A DNA stretch of 64,000 bases from Oculina patagonica (taxonomy: Eukaryota). The stretch is taken from contig NC_135768.1 in NCBI RefSeq assembly GCF_052425735.1, forward strand, positions 6,882,001 to 6,946,000, written 5' to 3'. The notes below the pieces were generated by a model that saw only the letters and a list, made by a program, of their open reading frames with translations, did no database searches and was not told the DNA's origin. The first letter of the stretch is position 1. Each line of letters begins with the position of its first letter. Shown here in pieces: positions 16,569-16,913 of the stretch. The position numbers and the translations under genes were made by a program.

Positions 16569-16802
16569 GCGTGCGTTTGGCCGGGCTTTAACAGCTGTTA
16601 TGCAAATTTTGACCTTGAACAGCTGTTGGACTTGAATATAAATGGGCCGGGTGATATGAATTCAGTGGAGTCTCAAAGGTTGTTTCGCTAGGATTTTATT
16701 TCAATTAGTCGAACAATGCAATTTTACACCCCGATTTCTTGAAACAATTTTCCTTTCCCTTGCATGTTTCAGAAATCGAGTTTACATTGCATAGCGCAAA
16801 AA

Positions 16803-16912
16803 ACGTCCGAAAACAAGCACGCCGAGGATTACCAGCGGGTTCTGCATCCGTTCGGAGAGGAGGCGGAAAACATTAAATTGAAAAAGTAACAACGCGCCTT
16901 AAAGACGTCTTC
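16803..16912 (+). pseudogene. Decayed copy of the methyltransferase 5' coding region, now the leader of GNAT copy 3
   Basis: ACGTCCGAAAACAAGCACGCCGAGGATTACCAGCGGGT-TCTGCATCCGTTCGGAGAGGAGGCGGAAAACA aligns with 13074 ATGTCCGACAGCAAGTTCGCCGCGGATTACCAGCGAGTCTCTGCATCCGTTCAGAGAGGAGATGGAAAACA (ATG to ACG, 1-nt deletion). Confidence 0.9.
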
Positions 16913-16913
16913 A

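Follow-up and report, generated by a model that had tools for sequence, protein, structure and literature searches.

Methyltransferase-derived 5' sequence joined to a constrained histidine acetyltransferase-like gene in Oculina patagonica

In a gene cluster of the stony coral Oculina patagonica, a HisAT/NAT16-like acetyltransferase gene, GNAT copy 3 (GNAT3), stands directly behind sequence that originated in a methyltransferase (MTase) gene. Judged by alignment, GNAT3 is joined to 590 bp or more from the 5' region of an MTase paralogue (about -480 to +111), a stretch that is collinear with a sister locus on the same chromosome (L001), and the substitution pattern of GNAT3 tells us that this gene is under purifying selection. 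To the whole account, in which this is an old chimeric locus whose MTase-derived segment acts as the GNAT3 promoter or 5'UTR, we assign a probability of roughly 0.5. The window referred to below is the entire stretch of DNA that was analysed (64,000 nt, contig NC_135768.1, positions 6,882,001 to 6,946,000), which contains no N.

Results

The window holds a tandem array of intronless acetyltransferase genes of the HisAT/NAT16 type, recognized by their Hisat_C matches, and in the 100 kb examined this HisAT-like family reaches at least 15 copies, interleaved with SAM methyltransferases. The following genes and broken copies were located in the window:

889-1818, + strand, GNAT copy with Hisat_C match
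6620-7562, broken GNAT copy
10610-11539, - strand, GNAT copy with Hisat_C match
11718-11939, broken GNAT copy
13074-13853, + strand, intact class I SAM MTase, 259 aa, Pfam Methyltransf_31/25/11
16914-17858, + strand, GNAT copy 3 (GNAT3), HisAT/NAT16-like acetyltransferase, 314 aa, Pfam Hisat_C at E 2.6e-16, protein exactly that of the called gene
53350-54417, + strand, GNAT copy with Hisat_C match
58973-60010, + strand, GNAT copy with Hisat_C match

GNAT3 and its paralogues resemble the HisAT/NAT16 histidine N-acetyltransferases (PMC12219266; PF24066) in their Hisat_C match (E about 1e-16) and their GNAT acetyl-CoA motif, and relatives in the same genome carry the source name “histidine N-acetyltransferase-like”. 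Within GNAT3, Hisat_C (PF24066) spans residues 162-272 with 60.1 bits against a cut-off of 27 and follows a GNAT fold in which the acetyl-CoA motif, RGQGV, is present. The family described here differs from HisAT/NAT16 in forming a large tandem array interleaved with SAM methyltransferases, and its members are putative histidine acetyltransferases.

The intact MTase of the window is one of the two close paralogues found of the gene from which the sequence upstream of GNAT3 derives. Its homologues measure 258-268 aa, which argues that the ATG at 13074 is the true MTase start and that the longer ORF from 12942 is not. A second MTase, P0002, with 83% amino acid identity, is held by L001 (CM126645.1 6,792,385-6,813,161, some 80 kb upstream) in a sister cluster flanked by HisAT-like genes. 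Both the source MTase and P0002 look like class I SAM methyltransferases (Methyltransf_31/25/11/23, GxGxG SAM loop); the name “juvenile hormone acid O-methyltransferase-like” is an automatic annotation only. A further locus used for comparison, L002, overlaps positions 1-3513 of the window exactly, which puts the window at about 6.88-6.95 Mb of CM126645.1. On L003, a Tara coral-associated metagenome scaffold of 6207 bp, an MTase gene (-) and a GNAT gene (+) are arranged head to head about 1.1 kb apart. Given that MTase and GNAT genes are adjacent in L001 as well as in L003, their linkage is older than the local duplications in this genome.

Upstream of GNAT3, and at the intact MTase itself, we recognized the following segments:

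16803-16912, + strand, relic of MTase codons 1-37, 79% identical to 13074-13184 and 82% to L001 10001-10111
16730-16802, + strand, proximal MTase-type 5' flank (-73 to -1), which the L001 MTase has and the window's own MTase lacks
16567-16731, + strand, block A', an MTase-type upstream block together with 25 nt of transposon end, 72.7% identical to 12935-13022 and 71% to L001 9790-9879
15215-15476, + strand, distal MTase-type 5' flank (about -480 to -220), separated from the rest by a transposon, 66.9% identical over 275 columns to L001 9521-9782, E 3e-25
12935-13022, + strand, upstream block of the intact MTase, common to block A' and its duplicate, block A

According to the initial annotation, 16803-16912 aligned with MTase coding sequence at 13074-13184, had suffered a change of ATG to ACG and a deletion of one nucleotide, and adjoined the GNAT ATG at 16914. 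The alignment that it called for (12930-13190 with 16590-16913) was run, and every one of these statements about the sequence was correct. When the window was compared with itself by blastn, 16802-16907 matched 13073-13179 at 79.4% over 107 nt (E 2e-20); ACG occupies 16803-16805 in place of the MTase ATG, and a base is absent after 16840. All identities given are blastn figures, a global-alignment script having produced inflated values through its lenient gap penalties. From the old MTase start at 16803 to the GNAT ATG at 16914 there are 111 nt, that is, 37 codons, and the relic comprises only codons 1-37, which lie 5' of the SAM loop. Under sensitive alignment settings MTase homology extends to 16912 and that to other GNAT genes sets in at 16910-16912, so that the breakpoint (16908-16911) is clean, with an overlap of at most 3 nt, and falls some 2-6 nt 5' of the GNAT3 ATG. 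Translation of 16803-16912 revealed stops in both reading frames of the relic, and these, together with the offset between the MTase frame and the GNAT frame, rule out an in-frame MTase-GNAT fusion protein. Retroposition is ruled out as well, because a poly(A) tract is absent and the 5' flank is included.

The similarity does not stop at the former start codon. Positions 16730-16912 are 82% identical to L001 9928-10111 (E 1e-42 to 5e-46), a match that includes 73 nt of proximal 5' flank, and further upstream 16593-16676 is 72.7% identical to 12935-13022 over 88 nt (E about 1e-6, window against itself by blastn). The 19-mer AGCTGTTATGCAAATTTTG, which had been reported as shared by 12935-12953, 16243-16261 and 16593-16611, occurs exactly three times, at 12935, 16243 and 16593, as against 0.07 matches with up to 3 mismatches in shuffled sequence, and 0 of 100 shuffles reached three. 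A second block described as shared, GGC.GGGT..TATGAATTC.G.GGAGTC, was likewise recovered in the alignment. Similarity to the MTase 5' region reaches beyond both of these blocks, across the transposon to 15215; 5' flank and first coding bases of a second gene (16593-16912 together with 15215-15476) are thereby joined directly to the acetyltransferase gene.

This MTase-derived leader is closer to the L001 MTase locus, and over a longer stretch, than to the window's own MTase. The letters in which it agrees with L001 against the window's MTase are mostly found in the outgroup L003 too and would represent a retained ancestral state, so that no particular donor can be named. About 70 nt of proximal flank, kept by the L001 MTase (9880-10000) and by the GNAT3 leader alike, is missing at 13023-13072 from the intact MTase of the window; since this flank was lost, the 5'UTR/promoter of the window's MTase would have been remodelled relative to its paralogue. 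Within the leader, 16724-16803 is about 74% like 42443-42583 (-), which ends in a poly(A) run, and an old SINE-like element may have contributed part of the MTase 5' region. A tblastn search for the remainder of the truncated MTase found none 3' of GNAT3 or elsewhere in the window on either strand, which lends no support to the idea that GNAT3 was inserted into an MTase gene or that a head-to-head pair was inverted. No other GNAT copy was found behind the same leader, be it in the window, L001, L002 or L003.

Between the distal flank and GNAT3, the MTase-type sequence is interrupted by a transposon and by local duplications:

15482-16239, no strand assigned, TIR transposon of 758 bp, in which 16187-16239 is an inverted match to 15533-15482 at 94.3%
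16217-16380, + strand, block A, transposon end plus MTase-type upstream block, 97.6% identical to 16567-16731
16379-16445, + strand, fragment B, a copy of GNAT3 CDS nt 37-104, 91.2% identical to 16950-17017
16444-16553, + strand, fragment C, a diverged copy of the MTase/GNAT junction (-16 to +90 of GNAT3), 88.2% identical over 110 to 16898-17003

The transposon possesses TIRs of 53 nt (94% identical), a TAA target-site duplication (15479-15481 and 16240-16242) and an internal tRNA-Thr(AGT)-like sequence (15760-15833, ARAGORN). Its very high depth in all four runs mapped indicates a high-copy family, which we take to be Harbinger/PIF-like, and one of its ends lies 8 nt upstream of an octamer-like ATGCAAAT motif. 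Block A carries the 19-mer (16243-16261), ATGCAAAT at 16250 and TATAAA at 16287. In fragment C, the GNAT start comes directly after the MTase-derived TTAAAGACGTCTT, so that the junction is recorded here once more, in diverged form (88% copy, 16444-16470). As a result of the transposon and the 350-bp duplication (16381-16731), the proximal 320 bp is now split from the rest of the MTase-type upstream region.

The GNAT3 ORF is intact over its 314 codons, and the ATG at 16917 is conserved among the paralogues and has a better context (A at -3, G at +4) than that at 16914. Both halves of the gene yield dN/dS values of 0.27-0.41, compared with 0.30-0.42 for intact paralogues; its own branch has a dN/dS of about 0.3 (5' half) or about 0.4 (3' half), at a dS of 0.08-0.36 overall and about 0.33-0.36 in the 5' half. 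An intact ORF combined with dN/dS of about 0.3-0.4 argues that the recipient of the MTase-derived sequence is a working gene under purifying selection. A second product on record for the GNAT3 locus is partial (146 aa, residues 153-298). The 5' half forms a long branch of its own and is at most 84% identical to any paralogue found. The 3' half (from about 17330) groups with the P0121 gene as its sister, which is located 24 kb upstream of GNAT3 (L002:10001-10945 compared), with a pairwise dS of 0.20, 89-95% nucleotide identity and tree support of 0.999, whereas identity to P0121 is no more than 60-81% in the 5' half and the trees of the two halves disagree. On these grounds GNAT3 is a mosaic, one that looks like the product of gene conversion between array members.

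The coding part of the relic differs from the MTases by a K of 0.21-0.24, which is roughly what would be expected of one lineage decaying neutrally. This is similar to the own-branch dS of GNAT3 (0.08-0.36), which argues that the junction is old and that GNAT3 has stood behind the leader for much or all of its life. No usable GNAT3 orthologue was found for a comparison of leaders, the best proteins outside this genome being about 70% identical.

Block A' contains the 19-mer (16593-16611), the octamer-like ATGCAAAT at 16600 and TATAAA at 16637, and it would be the nearest candidate core promoter for GNAT3; transcription that began about 30 nt past the TATAAA, near 16665-16675, would leave GNAT3 with two uORFs in a 5'UTR of about 245 nt. 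The octamer is unconserved, in that ATGCAAAT is found in the window's MTase and the L001 MTase has ATGTTAAT instead. Moreover, block A' is 71-73% identical between loci as compared with 69% between the two MTase flanks, and as it is no more conserved than neutral flank, there is no clear footprint of constraint in the leader. The longer of the two uORFs is the following:

16764-16889, + strand, 41-codon uORF whose ATG is new and shares the reading frame of the old MTase start

This new ATG lies 39 nt upstream of the former start, at a place where L001 has GAG, and the uORF ends 24 nt before the GNAT ATG; the other upstream ATG, at 16716, opens an 8-codon uORF, and upstream ATGs are absent from the equivalent 200 nt of the L001 MTase leader. 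It had been argued that loss of the MTase ATG is what selection for GNAT translation would favour. This argument fails, because a given 3-nt codon will have changed by chance with a probability of about 1 - 0.79^3 (~0.5) at 21% divergence, and because the gain of ATGs at 16764 and 16716 means that there has been no net purging of upstream starts. It would survive only if the TSS lay downstream of 16766. A transcript initiated in block A' would, on the other hand, include the 41-codon uORF, which should lower translation.

The RNA runs X1, X11 and X22 consist of short Logan contigs that are 3-5% diverged from the assembly. Most bins of the MTase CDS have RNA contigs in these runs (depth about 3-46), and the letters in which these contigs depart from the window (4-5%) correspond fully to neither known MTase. 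None of the three runs yielded a contig on 16343-17130, that is, on the leader and the GNAT3 5' half; as the runs stem from diverged material, such a coverage gap proves little. Of the chimeric gene that the initial annotation proposed, with MTase coding sequence turned 5' non-coding, the structural half stands, and the functional half, a captured promoter with regulation in common with the MTase, is a hypothesis. The GNAT3 3' half (17151-17721) attracted a few RNA contigs at 95-96% identity. The differing letters of contigs on 17150-17720 are mostly common to P0121 and other paralogues, and at two sites, 17433 C>A and 17611 T>A, the contig letters occur only in P0121, so that these contigs are probably cross-mapped P0121 transcripts. 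In a Logan-derived protein collection there were no partial proteins at least 90% identical to the N-terminal half of GNAT3, and the share-of-words figures of the run search, being dominated by transposons, say little about either gene. The RNA data thus provide neither a positive sign of transcription through the leader nor firm evidence against it.

Discussion

The alignments show that a DNA-level rearrangement, a partial duplication or deletion inside the tandem cluster, joined the 5' region of an MTase paralogue to a HisAT-like coding sequence about 4 nt before its ATG; the remainder of that MTase copy is gone, and its coding piece decayed to non-coding DNA. Later, the TAA-flanked TIR transposon split the flank, and local duplications gave rise to a further promoter-like block and to two fragments of the GNAT 5' end. 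GNAT3 would have been under purifying selection throughout and must therefore have been transcribed. That the MTase-derived segment is used as its promoter or 5'UTR is plausible, at perhaps a shade under even odds, because GNAT3 has been constrained while MTase sequence has long stood in front of it, which is the one argument in favor of such a capture and an indirect one. It is unlikely, by comparison, that the regulation of GNAT3 is shared with the MTase, and we likewise doubt that a duplicated MTase promoter drives GNAT3 in such a way that an MTase and a HisAT-like enzyme of one coral cluster are co-expressed.

Conceivably, the MTase piece could instead be inert debris without significance for regulation, the stump of a truncated MTase paralogue that birth-and-death turnover left behind, with GNAT3 being transcribed from elsewhere (the transposon, read-through or an internal start) or having recently fallen silent. 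We consider this quite possible, although clearly short of an even chance. It would account for the leader and the GNAT3 5' half having no RNA contig while the 3' half is apparently cross-mapped, for a second recorded product that spans residues 153-298 only, and for a leader that is without clear constraint and has gained upstream ATGs. It would also suit a locus full of rearrangements, in which a transposon sits 8 nt from the octamer-like motif and other GNAT copies of the cluster are broken (6620-7562 and 11718-11939). However, with its ORF intact and dN/dS at 0.3-0.4 along a branch whose dS is 0.08-0.36, GNAT3 must have been expressed during most of its existence, and the 320 nt upstream of it consists of MTase-derived sequence only; given runs that are 3-5% diverged from the assembly, gaps in RNA coverage prove little against the promoter/5'UTR reading.

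An assembly artefact, in which reads of an MTase and a GNAT paralogue were mis-joined, is very improbable. The region is certainly repeat-rich, with local duplicates at 97.6%, and in X16 there is almost no depth on 16343-16539 and one contig stops matching at 16841. Yet the MTase piece is 79-82% identical to either MTase and the GNAT3 5' half at most 84% identical to any paralogue, so that no known pair would yield the junction; the junction is, moreover, present twice, at 88% identity, and X16, a run of uniform DNA-like depth whose match to this locus is 95% or more, spans 16540-17130 at single-copy depth, about that of the MTase gene. Least credible of all is a dispersed element inserted independently beside both genes, for although the likeness of 16724-16803 to 42443-42583 (-), about 74% and with a poly(A) end as in a SINE-type tail, would suit one, the similarity continues unbroken past the flank and through 110 nt of MTase coding sequence, stays collinear with L001 for 590 bp and concerns a segment of single-copy depth in X16.

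Chimeric genes that recruit the 5' sequence of another gene have been described among the tandem-duplication chimeras of Drosophila yakuba (PMC5460883), and chimeric genes can also be repeat-mediated (PMC2211543). The GNAT3 locus is like such partial or tandem-duplication chimeras (PMC5460883, PMC2211543) in that the 5' flank and first codons of one gene are joined to the body of its neighbor in a tandem cluster; former coding sequence has become leader, and the locus has neither introns nor a poly(A) tract to suggest retroposition. It is unlike them in that the recruited coding piece is untranslated in the product, such that no protein chimera arises, and in that the recruited promoter is a candidate only; the junction is also old (K about 0.2), unlike segregating duplications. 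Structurally, the GNAT3 locus is a well-documented instance of a common process, and on present evidence it reveals no new mechanism.

Were the recruited segment a working promoter, the locus would constitute a stepwise record of the rewiring of an animal enzyme cluster, in which the junction, the decay of the ORF, the transposon and the duplications can each be read, and it would hint that methyltransferases and HisAT-like enzymes act together; the MTase-GNAT adjacency in L003 fits such a functional linkage. Should the two genes in fact share their regulation, an animal metabolic gene cluster would have gained co-regulation by copying the promoter of one member before another.

Two minor observations concern the DNA between the MTase gene and GNAT3. 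On 16343-16539, depth in X16 is 2.5 as opposed to 150-480 alongside, and the 350-bp duplication with its GNAT fragments may be absent or diverged in the organism from which X16 came, possibly as a structural polymorphism. Finally, 14290-14470 forms a long near-perfect inverted repeat (MITE-like) of very high depth in all four runs.
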